A stretch of 64,000 nt of DNA from Andalucia godoyi And28 (lineage: Eukaryota > Protista > Jakobida): contig VRVR01000032.1 of NCBI GenBank assembly GCA_009859145.1, forward strand, positions 90,854 to 154,853. The letters are read 5' to 3'. The translations under genes and the position numbers were made by a program. Below are positions 3,259 to 63,214 of this stretch, piece after piece. Under the pieces are notes generated by a model that was not told where the DNA came from, searched no databases, and saw only the letters and a program-made list of their open reading frames with translations. How positions within the stretch are numbered: the first letter of the stretch is position 1; every line of letters begins with the position of its first letter.

Positions 3259-3759
3259 TCTTACGATGCTTGTCCTATTCTTGGTTTTTTCGAAATTAAT
3301 TCTTTTTTTTTCCCTCCTCTTCCTTCTTCTCTTTACTGCAAAATTTATTAAAAACGTCGGTTTTGAATAACTTATGAATCAGAAGACAGGAAAGAAGGAG
3401 GAAAAGAAAGGGAAAAGAAAGAGAAAAGAAATACAGAGATTGATTGAACGCGGGACTTGGATTGGTCTTGGAGTAAGTGGAGGAGGAGGGTCGAGGTCTA
3501 ATATTTCCACCTTCCAAATGGCTCGACCAAACGAATGCCCGAAGCGCGAACACTTTTGCTGCCTCGTTTCAACCCAGCCTCGGGTGCTTTTCACAGGATC
3601 ATGCATCACGTGATGCTAATGCTATGGGTTTTCTTTCTGTTTCCTGTCGTACAGTGGTGGTGGTCCGTGCTCTGCTTCCCCGTTTTGAGTTTTGTTTCCT
3701 TCTTGGACGCCATGCGAGCCGCAAGAGTCACCTCTCAGGACCAAGATCGCGGAATCCCA

Positions 3760-8861: not shown

Positions 8862-8951
8862 GGCACTCTATCAGAAAGCGTTTCTTTTCCCAGACCACAC
8901 CTCCCCTACAAGACGGAAAGAGGCACATAGAACATTTACAAAACCGAAGAA

Positions 8952-9500
8952 GAATAACACGTCATTGTCATGCATACGGAAAAGCATCCATAAGCAGACA
9001 CGGACTACACTGGCCGACACTAGCACGTTTTGTTTCACAGGGAATTCGTGCTTACGCACGCTCGGCCAAAATTCAGCCTGTGACACAGGCTCCGCATTTT
9101 CGACACTCTTTAACGCAGCATCTGTAGCCATCTATTCTATCATTCGTGGGTTTCACTTTATTAATTCAAATATGGGCGTGAGTGCGCTGGGATGACGCAC
9201 TCGCCTACGCCTACGCCGCCCGATACAGGGCCTCCTAGGTCCCGCAGACCTCCTAAGAGACCACGTGTCACTACGCCTGCTGCTAGGGCCGTCAGAATCA
9301 AAATGCACCCTTCTCAGGAACAACGTGTCACGCTGAGAAAGTGGCTCACATATTGATCGAGATTGGGAACGGAGCGCGGAGCATCTATCTGAAGAGCGCC
9401 GTGAGGCGTGTTGGGGGCCGATCCCCTTCCGGGCAACGGGATGCAAGACTGAATATGCACGTCTATTCGTAGATATGCATGTTCAGTGTATAATGTAGGC
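8952..9500 (+). mobile_element. Non-autonomous Fanzor/TnpB-derived element, copy 1 (internally deleted; omegaRNA-like right end)
   Basis: Colinear with the reverse complement of 57190-57807. ATG 9192 to TGA 9356 encodes MTHSPTPTPPDTGPPRSRRPPKRPRVTTPAARAVRIKMHPSQEQRVTLRKWLT (TnpB/Fanzor KIRxYPTxEQxxxLxKW motif). 9352-9394 encodes IDRDW[+g]NGARSIYLK (RuvC-III motif). A hairpin follows at 9446-9489. Confidence 0.85.
9438..9500 (+). ncRNA. Putative 3' module of a Fanzor omegaRNA scaffold (long stem with UUCG loop)
   Basis: Stem 9448-9465 pairs with 9470-9487 (one C-A mismatch, two G-U pairs) and is closed by TTCG. It lies downstream of the RuvC-III remnant and immediately before the point where the two copies diverge. 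Confidence 0.6.
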
Positions 9501-9687
9501 GAAGAAGAACGCGAAAATCCTGGCCAATACTGTGTGCTATGGAGCAGTTTTTGGTTTTGCAGTTTAAAAAATACGAATATGAATAAAAAGAATGAAAATC
9601 GAAATGCGCTACACATGGAAAATGAACACGGAATCAAGCAACCACAACAACAACAACAACAAACAAGTAGGGGGGAATGATCATGGA

Positions 9688-30340: not shown

Positions 30341-30343
<3 letters not shown>

Positions 30344-30431
<88 letters not shown>
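30344..30431 (+). repeat. (GT)44 microsatellite between convergent genes
   Basis: 88-bp perfect GT run between stops at 30310 and 30453. Confidence 0.97.
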
Positions 30432-30433
<2 letters not shown>

Positions 30434-34179: not shown

Positions 34180-34184
34180 CTCTT

Positions 34185-34188
<4 letters not shown>

Positions 34189-34226
<38 letters not shown>
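34189..34226 (+). repeat. (TG)19 microsatellite just upstream of PIG-C
   Basis: Perfect TG run ~10 bp upstream of the PIG-C ATG. Confidence 0.95.
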
Positions 34227-42726: not shown

Positions 42727-43456
42727 TCTCACGGTGCAGTTGTTCAGACAGTTAAAAAAAAAAAACGAGAGTATCAAAAGGAATGGAGAACGATGCTTTT
42801 CTTTTTTTCTTTTTCTTTTTCTTTTCGAAGGTTCACAGCTTTAGTTCCGGAAAGAAGAAAGAAAAAAAAGGAGAATGGACGGTATCACGAAAGAGGAGGT
42901 GACGTCAAGAAGGCCTGTTTAAGAAAGAGTCTTTTTTCTTTCTTTCTTTCTTTTTCAAAAAAGAAACAAAACAAAACAAAATATGAAAATCAATCAATAT
43001 TTTTATTAAAATATAAAAAAACATTATAGTAAATTAAGAAAATAAAATAAGAAAAAGAAGGGAATGGATGGGGGATGGAGCAAAAAGGGTGGTAAATCGA
43101 AGAGACACGAACGTGGTGATTTGAAGTGGCTTGAATGACCCTCTCTCCCTTTCTCTTAATTTTTAATTTGGGTGGGGACTATTTCGAAGGGAAATGGGAA
43201 ACTCACACTGCACCCCAGACCGAGCACGCCGTCCACCTACAGCGACGACTCAAATGCAGAAGGGACTCATTTTTTTCCTTCCATTATTTAAATATTTTTT
43301 GTGGGACTTCATCATCACTTGAACACTGTGTCGCGCGAACTGTCAGTGCGCTGACACGCTGCGTGGACTCTGACATTCGTGCATCCTTTTGCCTAATTTC
43401 CCCATCGCGAACACCCTTTGAGCTTTGTTCTTCTATTTCCTCACTCTGTGTGTGTT

Positions 43457-43500
43457 TCTCTCTCTCTCTCTCTCTCTTTCTTTCTCTCTCTCTCTCTCTC
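43457..43500 (+). repeat. (CT)n microsatellite
   Basis: Near-perfect TC run upstream of NAC-alpha. Confidence 0.9.
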
Positions 43501-43589
43501 TGTTTCTCTGTTTCTCTGTTTCCTTGCCTCCCGGATTGCCTCCCAAATATCTTCCTCTCTCCCCAAGTCTGTTGAATTCCCTCCCGAGA

Positions 43590-56990: not shown

Positions 56991-57189
56991 TTCGAGTGAT
57001 TGGGTTTCCACACGGTTTTTGTTTCCGTTTCCGTTTGCTTTTGTTTTGTTTTATTTTCTTTTTCTGTTTGTTCTTTAAAGAATCATAAGAGGAAATTCGT
57101 AAAAATGTCCAGCACAATGACATTCCTTTGTTATTATCGTGGTTTTTTTGGTTTTTTTTTGTTTGTTTTCTTGGCGTGAATTCCTTGTG

Positions 57190-57807
57190 CCAACATTATG
57201 CACTGAATATGCATATCTACGAATAGGCATGCATATTCAGTCTTGCATCCCGTTGCCGGGAAGGGGATCGGCCCCCAACACGCCTCACGGCGTTCTTCAG
57301 ATAGATGTTCCGCGCTCTGCTCCCAAACTCGATCAATCGGTGAGCCACTTTCCCAGCGTGACACGTTGCTCCTGAGAAGGGTACATTTTGATTCTGACGG
57401 CCCTAGCAGCAGGCGCTTTCGTGTCCTCAGTTGCAGCGATTGATGCAACTGGAGACACGAGAGGAAGAGGCGGTAGGTGTAGTGACACGTGGTCTCTTAG
57501 TAGGTCTGCGGGACCTAGGAGGCCCTGCATCGGGCGGCGTAGGCGTAGGCGAATGCGTCATCCCAGCGCACTCACGCCCACATTTGAATTAAAAAACGAA
57601 ACCAACGAATGATAGAATGATAGATGGCTACGGATGCTGCGTTAAAGAATGTCGAAAATGCGGGGCGTGTGTCACCGGCGGCTGAATTCTGGCCGAGCGT
57701 GGGTAAGCACGAATTCCTGTGAAACAAACGTGCTAGTGTCGGAAAGCATTGACCGTGTCTGTTTATGTTTACTTCCGTATATGCATGACAATGACGTGTC
57801 ATTATTC
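57190..57807 (-). mobile_element. Non-autonomous Fanzor/TnpB-derived element, copy 2
   Basis: Reverse complement aligns end to end with 8952-9500. ATG 57561 gives MTHSPTPTPPDAGPPRSRRPTKRPRVTT; after a frameshift, AARAVRIKMYPSQEQRVTLGKWLT; then IDRVW[+g]SRARNIYLK at 57337-57295. Same TTCG hairpin; ends ATAATGTTGGC. Carries a 64-bp segment (57415-57478) absent from copy 1. Confidence 0.85.
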
Positions 57808-57812
57808 AACGG

Positions 57813-60398
57813 CTACTTGTTGGATTCTGAAGATCCATTCGGATGCGAGAACTGAGAAATTGTTGCATACTTGGCAAGAAGATCCCCGAGAGGGCGATTC
57901 ATCGCCTTCCTCTTCGGAGCCTGAAGAGCAAAGACTTGCATGCACCGAGATGGCACACTCAACGTGGCATGTGGTACAATTTGCTCGCCAATCTCACTTT
58001 CATTCGAAGTGTCCAGCAGACGTACCCAAAACACGGAAGGAGAGATGCTCCTAATGTTAGGCAGCGACTTGCGAGATCGCGATACACCATGGAGAGCAGT
58101 GGGAACGGACAATGAAGAGGAGATCTGCAAGGAGCTACCCGACGTGGGCGGTGCATGTTCGCCGAAAGAAATGACCGGGCTGCGGCCCTCGATAGCTTTC
58201 GCTTGGCGATTCGAAGGAGATGCTTTCGGGATGTTGCTCGCACCCGTTTCAAAGACCCTTGAGGAACGGAACCCAGAATTGGGACCATCTTCAGCTGGAG
58301 CCAGAGTCATCGCGTTGACGACAGCTCCGGCAGACGGGATCACAAACGACACCGCTTCCCAATAAGCGTTGATCAGGATCAGCAACGTGTCTCCATTTTC
58401 GTCTTCGGGGTTCTTGGGAACTAAAATGCCGATGGAGCGCGCGTGAAACTCGTTCCATTCCTCCGTTTTCATCTCATGTCCTGCAGGATTGAACCAACGG
58501 TGCGGGAGGTCGTAGGAAACACACTGGAGAGACAAGTTTCTTTGACGAATTCTCATGCACTGCTCACAAAATTCAAGAAATTCCGTGGCTTGCTGCGACG
58601 ACTCGAGATTCAGTGGTTCAATGCCCACTGACGAGGCAACGTCCGCATGGGAGTGATTCAAATCATCAGACCCGACGTCGTCGTCGTTGAAATACGCATC
58701 CCAGTGGACCCAAGTTAACGGGGAATCATGGCAGTACACGTTGTTGTTTCCTTTGTGAGTTTGGGACAGCTCATCGCCGCCGCGGATCATGGGAGTCCCC
58801 ACCGAAAACGCCAACGTTGCAAACAGATTCCGCTTCTGGCGAGCACGGAGCTCCAAGATGTCGGCGTCAAACGTAGGTCCTTCAATACCGCAGTTCCACG
58901 AGAGGTTGTGTGACTCGCCATCTCTGTTCCCCTCTCCATTCGCATCGTTATGTTTGTCATTGTACGTGACGAGATCATGCAACGTAAAGCCATCATGTGC
59001 ACACAGGAAATTCACTGAAGACGAGGGATGTCTTCCTGCCTCTCCGCGGTACAAGTCCGAGGAACCGGCCATTCGGCACGCAAGTTCGGACAACGGGCAG
59101 TGAGCGTTCCAGAAAGCACGCACAGAATCCCGGAATTTTCCGTTCCATTCTGCCCAGTGAGTGGAAAACTGCCCAACCAGGTATCCATTTGGACCGCAAT
59201 CCCACGGCTCTGCAATCAACTTCACTCCTTGGATGAGAACTGGGTCCTGATTGACAACATCCACCCAAAAGCTGTCGATCTGGCCCTCTGAACCTCTTGT
59301 CAGGGCCGAAGCAAGATCGAAGCGGAAACCATCCACATGGCAGTGCTGGACCCAGTATCGAAGCGAATCCAGCACCAACTGCAGTGTCGCGGGGTTTCGA
59401 GTATTCAGAGAGTTGCCGCAGCCCGTAAAATCGGTGAAGTACCGCTTTCCACCAGGGTTTAGCGGACCCCCTTCCAGGCGGTAGTAAGACGAACAGTCAG
59501 CGAGTTTCAAGTGGAAGCTGGGACCTTCTTGATTCCCTTCACATGTGTGATTGTACACGACATCGAGGATGACTTCAATTCCCGCGTCATGAAGTGCACG
59601 CACCATGCATTTGAATTCAAAAATTGCAGTCTGTGGATCAGGAGAGGTTGCGAACCGAACGTCCGGAGCAAAGAACCCTAGTGTATTGTAGCCCCAGTAG
59701 TTCGTCATGCCGCGTCCAGCGATCATGCCTTCGTCGACATGATAGTGAATCGGCAAGAGTTCGATGGCCGTCACACCCATGGCTTTCAAGTGACTGATAA
59801 CACATTCACAGGATATCCCCAAGAACTTCCCTCTCAAGTGTTCCGGAACGCCGGGATGCAGCATCGTGAGCCCCTTGACGTGCGCCTCGTAAATCACAGT
59901 CTTGTGAAAAGGAATGCGCGGTGGTCGATCTACGCCCCATGAAAACGCATCGTCAATCACCATGGACAGCGGCGCAAAGGCAGCATTATCAGACTCGTCC
60001 TTGACCATATCGTCACGACGCTCGGCAGGCTGAGCGACATGCGAAAACATCGATGCATCGTAGTTGATCGAGCGAGCTATGCCTTTGGCGTATGGGTCCA
60101 AACACAGCTTGCTAGCATTGCAACGCAAGCCGTTCTCGGGATCCCAGACTCCGTCCACTCGGAAAGAATACAGCTGACCCGGTCGGACGTTGCGAAGATG
60201 GCCGTGAAAAACATGGTTGGTCTTTCTAGGTAGAGGAATCCGCATGGACTCCTGCTTGTCAGTAACATTGTCAAACAAGCACAGATACACTGCGCGTGCA
60301 ACGGAGGAATAAATTGCAAAGTTGCATCCAAGTCCATCAAACGTCGCACCAAGCGGGTACGGCGCACCGTCTGTGAGAATATCGTCGTACGGAAGCAT
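57813..60398 (-). CDS. glgX: Glycogen debranching enzyme / isoamylase GlgX (GH13_11 with CBM48)
   Basis: GAPYPLGATFDGLGCNFAIYS, IYEAHVKGLT, NYWGYNTLGFFAP, ILDVVYNHT, DGFRFDLA (Asp), KLIAEPWD (Glu), FLCAHDGFTL (Asp), GTPMIRGGDE, GNNNVYCHD. Confidence 0.96.
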   Translation of the reverse strand: MLPYDDILTDGAPYPLGATFDGLGCNFAIYSSVARAVYLCLFDNVTDKQESMRIPLPRKTNHVFHGHLRNVRPGQLYSFRVDGVWDPENGLRCNASKLCLDPYAKGIARSINYDASMFSHVAQPAERRDDMVKDESDNAAFAPLSMVIDDAFSWGVDRPPRIPFHKTVIYEAHVKGLTMLHPGVPEHLRGKFLGISCECVISHLKAMGVTAIELLPIHYHVDEGMIAGRGMTNYWGYNTLGFFAPDVRFATSPDPQTAIFEFKCMVRALHDAGIEVILDVVYNHTCEGNQEGPSFHLKLADCSSYYRLEGGPLNPGGKRYFTDFTGCGNSLNTRNPATLQLVLDSLRYWVQHCHVDGFRFDLASALTRGSEGQIDSFWVDVVNQDPVLIQGVKLIAEPWDCGPNGYLVGQFSTHWAEWNGKFRDSVRAFWNAHCPLSELACRMAGSSDLYRGEAGRHPSSSVNFLCAHDGFTLHDLVTYNDKHNDANGEGNRDGESHNLSWNCGIEGPTFDADILELRARQKRNLFATLAFSVGTPMIRGGDELSQTHKGNNNVYCHDSPLTWVHWDAYFNDDDVGSDDLNHSHADVASSVGIEPLNLESSQQATEFLEFCEQCMRIRQRNLSLQCVSYDLPHRWFNPAGHEMKTEEWNEFHARSIGILVPKNPEDENGDTLLILINAYWEAVSFVIPSAGAVVNAMTLAPAEDGPNSGFRSSRVFETGASNIPKASPSNRQAKAIEGRSPVISFGEHAPPTSGSSLQISSSLSVPTALHGVSRSRKSLPNIRSISPSVFWVRLLDTSNESEIGEQIVPHATLSVPSRCMQVFALQAPKRKAMNRPLGDLLAKYATISQFSHPNGSSESNK

Positions 60399-61801: not shown

Positions 61802-63214
61802 ATGTCAGATTCATCAGCAATGGTTGTAGAAGATTCCAACAGTTCGAAGCGCCGATATTTGCTCATGAATCCACGCGAACGATGGTCTGACGATGAGCAT
61901 AATCGCTTTTTGGAGGCTATTCGGTTGTTTTCTCGAGACTGGAAAAAGATAACAGAATACGTTGGAACAAAGAATATTTCGCAAGTGCGCTCCCATGCCC
62001 AAAAAGTGTTTGCAAAGATCCCCTCTTCCGAAGTGCCGCCTCCTCGAAAGAAGCCAAAGACGAGTCACGGCGACTTACCTTCCTTCTCCACGACTTCTGG
62101 AAGAAACTCCGGTCTAACGGCATCCGGTAACGGAATGGCAAGTCTGAACACCTCCAACAATATGATGTATGGGAACTTGAATCTCATGCCGTCCAGTGCG
62201 GCGAACTCCGGCCATTCACACATGACGCTTCTTCATTCCAATGGAGGTGGAGTGAATGGTACGCCAAGCAACAGTTATAGCACTTCGTCGACATCCATAT
62301 CGGATGCTCTTGTGATGAACATGGGCATGGGCATGAACATGAACATGAACATCGGCATGCCAGGTGATGTTCTAGGGCTTCAGTCGGTCATGTCGGACCC
62401 TTCCGGAGTCCTGATGCTCTCCACATCTGCTTCGGGAACGCACACTCATAATTCGACACCCACTTCCAGTAATATGCACGGATCCATGGAAACAAGCATC
62501 CCTATGAGCGGAGGAAGCTCTGCCGCGCCGAGCAGTAGCGCTGTATCAGGTGACTACGGATCTTCTGAAATGAGGCATCCGCAACAGCAACAGCATCCGC
62601 AACAGCACCAACAGCATCAGCATCAGCATCAGCAACAGCATCAGCAACAGCATCAGCAACAGCAACAGGTTCAACACGTTCAGCAACTGCATCAACAGTC
62701 TCCACGACAGCAACAGTTTCATCAACATCCACAATTGCAGCCACTGCATCCACCACAACCTGCGCAATCGCAAATTCTGCATTCTCCGCTGGATCCCTCT
62801 GGTGCTTCCGCTTCTTTACCACGCCATCTCCCCCAGCATGGGTTGATTGGTCCATACTCCTTGCATTCTGCCAATATCCGAGCGTCTACAGTCTCCAGCA
62901 TGAGTGATTGGAAGATGCAGATCGGACAACAATTGCGTCAGCAGTCGGAGGTTCCACTTTCTCTGCAGATGGAACATCACGGTAACCCCAATCTCCCTCG
63001 AGTACTGGGACTGCTTCTCGCTGCAGATAATCGAGATGAGTGGCATGCAAGGCTCCGGGAATGCTCGCCGACCGATATTCAGTTTGCGGATGTCCTTGTC
63101 CGCGCAGCCTATACTCGTCTGTCACTGTCCATGCCAGTCCCTTCGTCACACAGTTCTGGTGCAGATGGGCTGCCCGGTATCCTGAGGCCGCATCCTCTAC
63201 GACCCAGCTACTAG
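61802..63214 (+). CDS. Single-repeat MYB (SHAQKYF class, CCA1/REVEILLE-like) transcription factor with Q-rich region
   Basis: RERWSDDEHNRFLEAIRLFSRDWKKITEYVGTKNISQVRSHAQKVF followed by VPPPRKKPK; poly-Q/H tract. Confidence 0.88.
   Translation: MSDSSAMVVEDSNSSKRRYLLMNPRERWSDDEHNRFLEAIRLFSRDWKKITEYVGTKNISQVRSHAQKVFAKIPSSEVPPPRKKPKTSHGDLPSFSTTSGRNSGLTASGNGMASLNTSNNMMYGNLNLMPSSAANSGHSHMTLLHSNGGGVNGTPSNSYSTSSTSISDALVMNMGMGMNMNMNIGMPGDVLGLQSVMSDPSGVLMLSTSASGTHTHNSTPTSSNMHGSMETSIPMSGGSSAAPSSSAVSGDYGSSEMRHPQQQQHPQQHQQHQHQHQQQHQQQHQQQQQVQHVQQLHQQSPRQQQFHQHPQLQPLHPPQPAQSQILHSPLDPSGASASLPRHLPQHGLIGPYSLHSANIRASTVSSMSDWKMQIGQQLRQQSEVPLSLQMEHHGNPNLPRVLGLLLAADNRDEWHARLRECSPTDIQFADVLVRAAYTRLSLSMPVPSSHSSGADGLPGILRPHPLRPSY

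Follow-up and report, generated by a model that had tools for sequence, protein, structure and literature searches.

The DNA analyzed here, referred to as the window, is a stretch of 64,000 nucleotides (VRVR01000032.1, 301,874 bp, approximately positions 90,854-154,853; assembly GCA_009859145.1) from the nuclear genome of Andalucia godoyi And28 (Jakobida, Discoba). Within it lie two copies of a short repeat that resembles a cut-down Fanzor2 element, with fragments similar to both ends of a TnpB/Fanzor2-family nuclease followed by a putative guide-RNA (omegaRNA) scaffold. Copy A occupies 8944/8947-9501 on the forward strand and copy B 57188-57809/57812 on the reverse strand, as located by MAFFT, a repeat finder and blastn. 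The two repeats are colinear, are approximately 560-620 bp in length, and lie on the same scaffold, 48 kb from each other and inverted relative to one another. Their flanks are unrelated and the homology ends at both ends of the element. In a global alignment of 8943-9501 with 57188-57812 the copies were 92.4% identical (508 matches and 42 mismatches) and differed by 23 transitions, 19 transversions and 10 indels. The repeat finder reported three inverted arms: 9274-9500/57189-57415 at 93%, 9157-9283/57470-57596 at 94%, and 8944-9030/57726-57812 at 78%. The initial annotation of this DNA, made from the sequence alone, had described two colinear copies with unrelated flanks and roughly 85-90% identity, and this description agrees with the alignments apart from the higher identity now measured. 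It had placed the copies at 8952-9500 and 57190-57807, which are the correct loci but with limits that fall slightly short, and all of the peptides it quoted were present. Neither blastn nor tblastn nor the RNA model described below detected a third copy within the window. The features of the two copies, read 5' to 3' along each element, are as follows.

8944..8946, + strand: copy A, CCG resembling a target-adjacent motif (TAM), directly 5' of the left end; common to both copies, with unrelated DNA upstream.
8947..9191, + strand: copy A, left end and 5' non-coding region of about 245 nt; colinear with copy B at 86-93% identity.
9192..9353 (stop 9354-9356), + strand: copy A, N-terminal remnant of an open reading frame (ORF), 54 codons, with a KRPR stretch resembling a nuclear localization signal (NLS) and the WED/HTH motif RAVRIKMHPSQEQRVTLRKWLT; detected by hidden Markov model (HMM) and BLASTP.
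9346..9353, + strand: copy A, junction of the apparent internal deletion, with about 334 codons (about 1.0 kb) missing.
9352..9472, + strand: copy A, C-terminal remnant with RuvC-III motif DRDxNGARxI, consisting of IDRDW (9352-9366), an extra G (9367) and NGARSIYLK, to a TAG stop (9470-9472).
9405..9501, + strand: copy A, putative omegaRNA scaffold homologue, reaching the right end; detected by covariance model R2.
9502..9521, + strand: copy A, right flank at the presumed guide position (AAGAAGAACGCGAAAATCCT), assigned by the TnpB/Fanzor rule.
57810..57812, - strand: copy B, CCG adjoining the left end on its 5' side and immediately past the TAG stop of a CBM48/alpha-amylase gene.
57562..57809, - strand: copy B, left end and 5' non-coding region; colinear with copy A.
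57339..57561, - strand: copy B, N-terminal ORF remnant with ATG at 57561-57559, a frame-shifting 64-bp segment and the motif RAVRIKMYPSQEQRVTLGKWLT; detected by HMM.
57217..57337, - strand: copy B, C-terminal remnant consisting of IDRVW, an extra G (57322) and SRARNIYLK to a stop; RuvC-III degraded (D to V, NG to SR).
57188..57284, - strand: copy B, putative omegaRNA scaffold homologue ending ...AUAAUGUUGGCA; model R2 match at 57191-57284.
57168..57187, - strand: copy B, right flank at the presumed guide position (CAAGGAATTCACGCCAAGAA), assigned by analogy.

Both copies encode the N-terminal peptide MTHSPTPTPPD(T/A)GPPRSRRP(P/T)KRPRV..., which leads to AARAVRIKM(H/Y)PSQEQRVTL(R/G)KWLT; this is followed by IDR(D/V)W and, past the extra G, by (N/S)(G/R)AR(S/N)IYLK. 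Two profile HMMs were used to score 2,186 six-frame fragments of the window: a family HMM built from 120 relatives collected with ACa-1, a Fanzor2 of Acanthamoeba, and a clade HMM built from 113 relatives of the Naegleria protein NlovFz2. With the family HMM, the two N-terminal fragments ranked first (copy B, E = 0.0029) and second (copy A, E = 0.025), and the next fragment had an E-value of 0.93. The same two fragments, unedited, took the first two ranks with the NlovFz2-clade HMM (E = 1.1e-5 for B and 9.3e-5 for A, next 0.35), where that of copy A aligned at positions 144-177. Once the extra G was removed, the C-terminal fragment of copy A scored 19.3 bits (E = 4.4e-5) at positions 437-461 of the family HMM, and the joined fragments gave E-values of 1.7e-6 and 1.5e-7 with the family and clade HMMs, respectively; the RuvC-III fragment of copy B scored 7.8 bits (E = 0.14) with the family HMM. 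When the joined copy A peptide was compared with NlovFz2 by BLASTP, it aligned in the correct order with residues 94-137 (E = 2e-5) and residues 474-486 (E = 0.005). The profile HMMs and BLASTP thus uphold the Fanzor2/TnpB origin proposed in the initial annotation. The matched motifs are the N-terminal WED/HTH motif of the PF12323 type (h-K/R-h-R-h-Y-P-x3-Q-x3-L-x2-W) and the RuvC-III motif DRDxN(G/A)AxNI, which in this family lies near the C-terminus. The initial annotation had named the N-terminal motif that of IS607-type TnpB/Fanzor2; RAVRIKM...KWL is common to TnpB N-termini generally and is not peculiar to the IS607 type. A tblastn search of the window with full-length ACa-1 and ACa-2 gave only noise, and exact look-ups of the 54-residue ORF and of several neighboring ORFs found no record.

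The two fragments are separated in full-length relatives by 354-395 residues. On the NlovFz2-clade HMM, the N-terminal fragment stops at approximately position 178 and the C-terminal fragment begins at approximately position 513 of 547, equivalent to NlovFz2 residues 137 and 474, and the roughly 334 codons between them are gone together with REC, most of WED, RuvC-I, RuvC-II and the zinc finger. Neither copy has a counterpart of HMM positions ~180-512, where the RuvC-I Asp, the RuvC-II Glu and the CxxC...CxxC zinc finger would be expected; the loci are therefore remnants, and not genes, of the TnpB/Fanzor2 family. The junction is the same in both copies but for two base changes (A, ctcacATattgatcga; B, ctcacCGattgatcga), and a single extra G common to both throws RuvC-III out of frame. 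ACa-1 ends ...TDRDWNGARNIWLKF and has the N-terminal motif GKMRKICVFPMAQQKTLLKCWIGTVRW (Bao and Jurka 2013, PMC3627910); its RuvC-III counterpart reads TDRDWNGARNIWLK, and it also carries DRDWNGARNIWLK (PMC3627910). By comparison with this C-terminal sequence, the W of IDRDW is original and the G that follows it a 1-nt insertion. The common junction, the common extra G and the unrelated flanks all support the earlier proposal that a single deletion preceded copying.

The largest indel between the copies is a 64-bp segment present only in copy B (57416-57479, - strand). It is an inverted repeat capable of forming a hairpin with a 20-bp stem and is bordered by CACCT/CGCCT, and it may have been lost from copy A through microhomology at these borders. 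Without this segment the ATG of copy A is in frame with the N-terminal motif; with it, that of copy B is out of frame. Most of the substitutions that separate the coding remnants of the two copies are non-synonymous, and the omegaRNA region is 92.8% identical, compared with 92.4% for the whole element. Both copies look neutrally decayed since copying, with about 8% divergence, frameshifts and a degraded RuvC-III in copy B. The coding stretches are decaying remnants rather than genes, and neither copy is able to make a nuclease.

The 3' ~100 nt of both copies fold alike, into three hairpins followed by an AU-rich tail ending in GG(C)(G/A). In copy A the order is a first hairpin (H1) with a GGGG..CCCC stem, a second hairpin (H2), a UGCAAGA linker, a long hairpin (H3) and the tail AUAAUGUAGGCG; the fold of the copy B scaffold has a z-score of -3.2 to -3.75. 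The NlovFz2 omegaRNA scaffold used in cleavage assays is printed in the supplement of Saito et al. 2023 (PMC10432273), and covariance model R2 was built from the 3' 110 nt of this RNA alone with its predicted structure and run on the window with filters off. The top two matches among the 128 kb searched were 9405-9501 on the + strand (20.9 bits, E = 0.0067) and 57191-57284 on the - strand (17.3 bits, E = 0.043), and the third-best match in the window scored 11.1 bits (E = 1.2). Both of the leading matches span the whole model and lie on the strand of the ORF remnants. The match in copy A ends exactly at ...AGGCG, and the aligned end in copy B is 3 nt short of the ...GGCA terminus. A model derived from Naegleria alone therefore picks out exactly the two 3' ends, in agreement with the earlier suggestion that the guide-RNA cassette had been kept. 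The annotated NlovFz2 omegaRNA is 117 nt long and some 150 nt remain 3' of the deletion junction in the copies, so that essentially the whole scaffold fits 3' of the junction. If the scaffold were transcribed, the right flanks of the copies (9502..9521 and 57168..57187) would be read as the guide.

Model R2 was also applied to 21 giant-virus loci chosen by protein homology alone. Its three best matches all lay at the 3' end of an Fz2 ORF, in loci L005 (2906-3006, E = 2.4e-5), L025 (1667-1761, E = 2.5e-4) and L004 (4456-4576, E = 2.6e-3), and these homologues have an H1 of CGTTGGGACCT..CCCCT and a tail of ...AGGTG. Common to the Naegleria, viral and Andalucia sequences are H1 GUUGGG..CCCCU, a variable H2, a UGCA(A/G/U)(G/A) linker, a long variable H3 and a tail of (A/U)AUAAU..AGG(C/U)G. 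In the five-member alignment (A7), 94% of cells pair and 19 of the 27 pairs are changed on both sides, compared with 37-44% pairing in slid controls. The likeness in architecture suggests that one omegaRNA family is common to Naegleria, Andalucia and giant viruses. No Rfam family was found for the scaffold, and nhmmer with the A. godoyi right end gave nothing significant in the viral loci. A motif near Fz2 stop codons, TTGGG[AG]..CCC, seemed enriched (4 of 49 loci, 0.36 expected) but was dropped, two of the four being coding (RALGD).

The ends of the homology were compared with the known ends of related elements. Both copies carry CCG immediately 5' of the start of homology, at 8944-8946 in A and 57812-57810 in B. 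The TAM of NlovFz2 is 5'-CCG, and the annotated left-end (LE) motif of the Naegleria element (Nlov) begins CCGTTGAAG (Saito et al. 2023, PMC10432273). Copy B reads CCGTTGAAT there, and its 8-mer CCGTTGAA equals the start of the Nlov LE motif, although this is not significant alone. The CCG could equally be the first three nucleotides of the element instead of a flanking TAM, and the CG of the copy A CCG may represent a recombination core dinucleotide. On the right, copy A ends GGCG and copy B GGCA, and the Nlov element ...AAAGGCG. The junctions are thus C[CG]...GG[CG] in A and C[CG]...GG[CA] in B, with NlovFz2 likewise CCG...GGCG. Copy A and the Nlov element each carry CG at their two junctions, which is consistent with what the crossover of an IS607-type serine recombinase at a core dinucleotide would leave; the canonical IS607 core is GG and the TAM (T)GGG (PMC10711439, PMC10690162, PMC11832414).

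In copy A a 10-nt direct repeat, CGAAGAAGAA, is found at both junctions (8945-8954 and 9500-9509), the first 8 nt of the left end being the same as the first 8 nt of the right flank. In copy B the right flank (CAAGGAATTCACG) is loosely like the start of the left end (TTGAATAATGACACG). The junction repeat of copy A could stem from microhomology, from a preference for LE-like half-sites as targets, or from chance in A/G-rich DNA. We rejected it as a target-site duplication, since copy B has none. The left end and the reverse-complemented right end are weakly similar (6/500 and 3/500 shuffles), in part because the right end is palindromic. The initial annotation had called the copies a MITE-like family, that is, one resembling miniature inverted-repeat transposable elements; this is apt only in a loose sense. 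Neither a target-site duplication nor a convincing terminal inverted repeat is present. Helitron and Replitron readings, which the 3' hairpin and the short direct terminal repeats might have suggested, were also discarded: the termini are not TC...CTRR, no hairpin is conserved at the left end, and that at the 3' end is explained as omegaRNA stem H3.

Several short motifs recur in copy A. The motif ACGTGTCAC / GTGACAC is found at 9263-9271, 9323-9331, 9080-9088 and 8956-8964, in part within a 23-nt direct repeat (9249-9271 and 9309-9331), and CACGTC(A/T)ATT is found near both ends. These could be protein-binding sub-sites, or mere coding sequence.

Taken together, these observations make it very probable that both repeats derive, as ghost copies, from a single NlovFz2-like Fanzor2 element of the A. 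godoyi nuclear genome. The ancestral element would have been about 1.6 kb in length, comprising the left end, a non-coding leader of about 250 nt, an ORF of about 430-450 codons with an N-terminal NLS, and the omegaRNA scaffold extending to the right end, presumably with no transposase gene, as none is seen between the ends. One internal deletion of about 1.0 kb joined the opening ~53 codons to the closing ~40, a single nucleotide was inserted in the RuvC-III motif, and the truncated unit was copied to at least one further site; copying is placed after truncation because the junction and the frameshift are common to both copies and the flanks are unrelated. The copies have kept the cis equipment, namely the left end after CCG and a scaffold homologue of about 97 nt ending in GGCG (A) or GGCA (B). 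The scaffold RNA, if transcribed, could act only with a Fanzor2 protein supplied in trans, and an enzyme acting in trans most likely carried out the copying itself. It may have been an IS607-type serine recombinase, which would cross over at the CG core of both junctions; alternatively, Fanzor may have been guided to cleave empty sites, into which repair then copied the element. Empty sites would be expected to read ...CATTTACAAAACCG|AAGAAGAACGCGAAAATCC... and ...CCAACAAGTAGCCG|CAAGGAATTCACGCC....

A number of results weigh against this interpretation and should be noted. Each protein fragment is short, and the score of the C-terminal fragment depends on the removal of one base. Searches of standard libraries were negative or marginal because of this shortness: Pfam gave only HTH_OrfB_IS605 (PF12323) for copy B at E = 0.099, the NCBIfam scan of the fragments gave nothing useful, phmmer of each fragment against PDB gave irrelevant matches only (MHC class I and an EF-hand protein), and a profile of the N-terminal fragment run on an exhaustive protein library found two low-complexity repeat artifacts and nothing else. 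For the RNA, the E-values of R2 are modest and, owing to a shortened calibration, rough; the covariation count is biased towards structure, as the five-member alignment was fitted to the model; and neither nhmmer nor blastn with the Nlov omegaRNA found a significant match to the copies in the window. An earlier covariance model, R1, built from the two A. godoyi copies, was uninformative and was replaced by R2; it also scored generic long hairpins in giant-virus locus L032, and hairpin H3 alone is therefore weak evidence. At the left end, DNA similarity to the Nlov LE was not significant (28/1000 shuffles for A, 246/1000 for B). No transposase was found between the element ends, and tblastn with the N-termini of two TnpA-TnpB fusions gave no match in the window. 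No intact A. godoyi Fz2 was recognized in the protein collection, either by a word-indexed search with the joined fragments or by the search for NlovFz2 relatives, and scans of metagenome and viral sequences with the joined peptide and one exact omegaRNA DNA pattern found no further copies and no full-length Fanzor, both of which the initial annotation had suggested.

The L032 hairpins are of some interest in themselves. This locus (IMGVR_UViG_3300032431_000001) has near-perfect long intergenic hairpins at 514-597, 3417-3495 and 80-184, away from its Fanzor2 gene, and hairpins of this type are a confounder for omegaRNA searches in such genomes.

Of the other explanations, the one that survives best, though we consider it unlikely, is that the ghosts still serve as guide-RNA genes for an intact Fanzor2 that is encoded at another A. 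godoyi locus and uses their RNAs in trans. There is a precedent in Spizellomyces punctatus, where 134 ORF-less ghost Spu-1 elements of about 550 nt keep their inverted repeats and omegaRNA (Saito et al. 2023, PMC10432273), and where the ghost omegaRNA works with SpuFz1 in human cells (PMC10432273). The scaffold architecture is likewise kept in both copies here. Moreover, the VRVR01 assembly omits several short subtelomeric scaffolds, mainly of transposon- and virus-like sequence (PMC7050145), and these could hold an intact copy. However, conservation in the omegaRNA region hardly exceeds that of the whole element (92.8% and 92.4%, as given above), changes in the stems are mismatches as well as repairs, copy B ends in GGCA and not GGCG, and the protein collection yielded no recognizable A. 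godoyi Fz2. A fuller version of this idea, with an active A. godoyi Fanzor2 (for example, subtelomeric) served by ghosts acting as dispersed trans guide-RNA genes, in an RNA-guided DNA-targeting arrangement with more guides than nuclease genes, is slightly less likely again. If it were true, the CCG TAM and the omegaRNA likeness to Naegleria would point to an old Discoba Fanzor2 lineage or to repeated delivery by giant viruses.

About equally doubtful is the possibility that a single relic was duplicated or spread by gene conversion, through recombination or repair and with no transposition machinery involved. The facts that there are only two copies, inverted and 48 kb apart on one scaffold, that no target-site duplication or clear terminal inverted repeat is present, and that the window has no transposase would all fit such an event, and the CG+AAGAAGAA found in copy A at 8945-8954 and 9500-9509 would offer possible microhomology. 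Nevertheless, the limits of homology are functional ones in both copies, with CCG on the left and the scaffold end GGCG/GGCA on the right, and random copying is not expected to respect such limits; elements of the NlovFz2 and IS607 types also lack target-site duplications. Finally, a non-coding dispersed repeat that mimics TnpB motifs by chance and has a generic hairpin at one end might be entertained from the lack of significant matches in standard libraries, the negative nhmmer and blastn searches with the Nlov omegaRNA, and the readiness of a hairpin-dominated RNA model to match unrelated hairpins, but it is highly improbable given that three independent signals (the N-terminal motif, with an E-value of 1e-5 unedited, RuvC-III, and the omegaRNA model derived from Nlov) coincide within the same 560 bp, correctly ordered and on the expected strand, with the CCG at the left end as a fourth.

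On the favored reading, as ghosts of a Fanzor2 element, the A. godoyi copies invite comparison with several known systems. Like ghost Spu-1, they have no Fz ORF, retain the element ends and an omegaRNA homologue, and occupy unrelated sites. Ghost Spu-1 is, by contrast, of Fanzor1 type, with 30-nt inverted repeats, a CA motif, 134 copies beside 19 full-length genes, and omegaRNAs that have been shown to work, whereas the A. godoyi ghosts are of Fanzor2 type, have no clear inverted repeats, preserve N- and C-terminal ORF stubs that record the deletion, and number two in 64 kb. Unlike Spu-1, they have no intact partner that could be found in the protein collection.

The closest resemblance is to the NlovFz2 element, for which Saito et al. 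2023 (PMC10432273) report neither inverted repeats nor an association with a transposase. Like it, the A. godoyi copies have CCG before the LE and a long non-coding leader (about 440 nt from LE to ATG in Nlov), and they have neither inverted repeats nor a transposase inside. The start of the NlovFz2 ORF, ...PTHPPTNP..., can be set beside MTHSPTPTPP, and both coding sequences have the N-terminal motif K(I/M)R(L/M)(Y/H)P..Q(E/R)..L..W and the RuvC-III motif DRDxNGAR. Their omegaRNAs have in common H1 GUUGGG..CCCCU, the UGCAAGA linker, a long hairpin and the tail AGGCG. The differences are that NlovFz2 is intact (477-495 aa) and active and the A. godoyi copies are not; that the NlovFz2 omegaRNA starts past the stop codon, whereas the A. 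godoyi scaffold overlaps the decayed reading frame; that DNA identity between the two is too low for blastn or nhmmer; and that the hosts belong to different classes of Discoba.

IS607, ACa-1 and the IS607-like Fanzor2 elements of mimivirus resemble the A. godoyi copies in having a related protein family, no target-site duplication and a TAM that abuts the left end, and the dinucleotide found at both junctions of copy A (CG...CG) may correspond to the matching core of IS607. Unlike IS607, there is no TnpA serine recombinase in the window, and CG/CCG takes the place of the GG core and (T)GGG TAM. Among the loci examined, L083 (2268-4221 of JAWVHD010000085.1, GCA_040384145.1) has a 406-aa Fanzor2/TnpB-like gene with, immediately upstream, a 144-aa ORF that weakly matches Resolvase; by its sequence this pair is a putative IS607-like TnpA-TnpB pair on a 285-kb scaffold. 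Palindrome-associated transposable elements (PATEs) are short prokaryotic derivatives of IS200/IS605 that have neither transposase nor nuclease, keep their ends, and can keep the guide-RNA region; they are mobilized as single strands by the Y1 HUH transposase TnpA via subterminal hairpins at both ends. They provide a looser analogue, being prokaryotic and from a different element family than the A. godoyi ghosts. The term PATE occurs in PMC10690162.

ORF-less ghost Fanzor loci have been known since 2023 (PMC10432273), and the A. godoyi copies are a fossil in a new lineage and not a new system; they leave the view of how Fanzor systems work unchanged. They do extend Fanzor2-derived elements to a jakobid, and the literature that we searched, in a limited search that is not proof of absence, yielded no report of Fanzor or TnpB in this group. 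The origin of these ghosts can be read in the sequence itself, where ~53 codons from the start of the nuclease gene are joined at a single junction to ~40 from its end. The TAM-like CCG and the omegaRNA architecture found in Naegleria, giant-virus contigs and Andalucia form a small comparative set (alignment A7 and model R2), and there is now a concrete reason to seek an intact Fz2 in the A. godoyi reads.

The nuclear genome of A. godoyi is approximately 20 Mb, gene-dense and with few introns (PMC7050145), and the neighbors of the two copies in the window are ordinary eukaryotic genes, encoding an M48 peptidase, an ABC1 kinase, a BEACH protein, a MORN protein, a CBM48/alpha-amylase enzyme and a Myb protein. 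Copy A has the M48 gene's 5' end on one side, sitting 86 bp upstream of its start codon, and the 3' end of the BEACH gene on the other. Copy B begins 3 nt past the stop codon of the CBM48/alpha-amylase gene (debranching/branching-type; 57813-60398, - strand), in the same orientation, and probably forms its 3' untranslated region. Elsewhere in the window, long (TG)n and (CT)n microsatellites occur in intergenic DNA and the Myb-domain ORF holds a CAG/CAA (poly-Gln/His) tract; together these repeats are found at 30341-30433, 34181-34225, 43456-43513 and 62575-62700.

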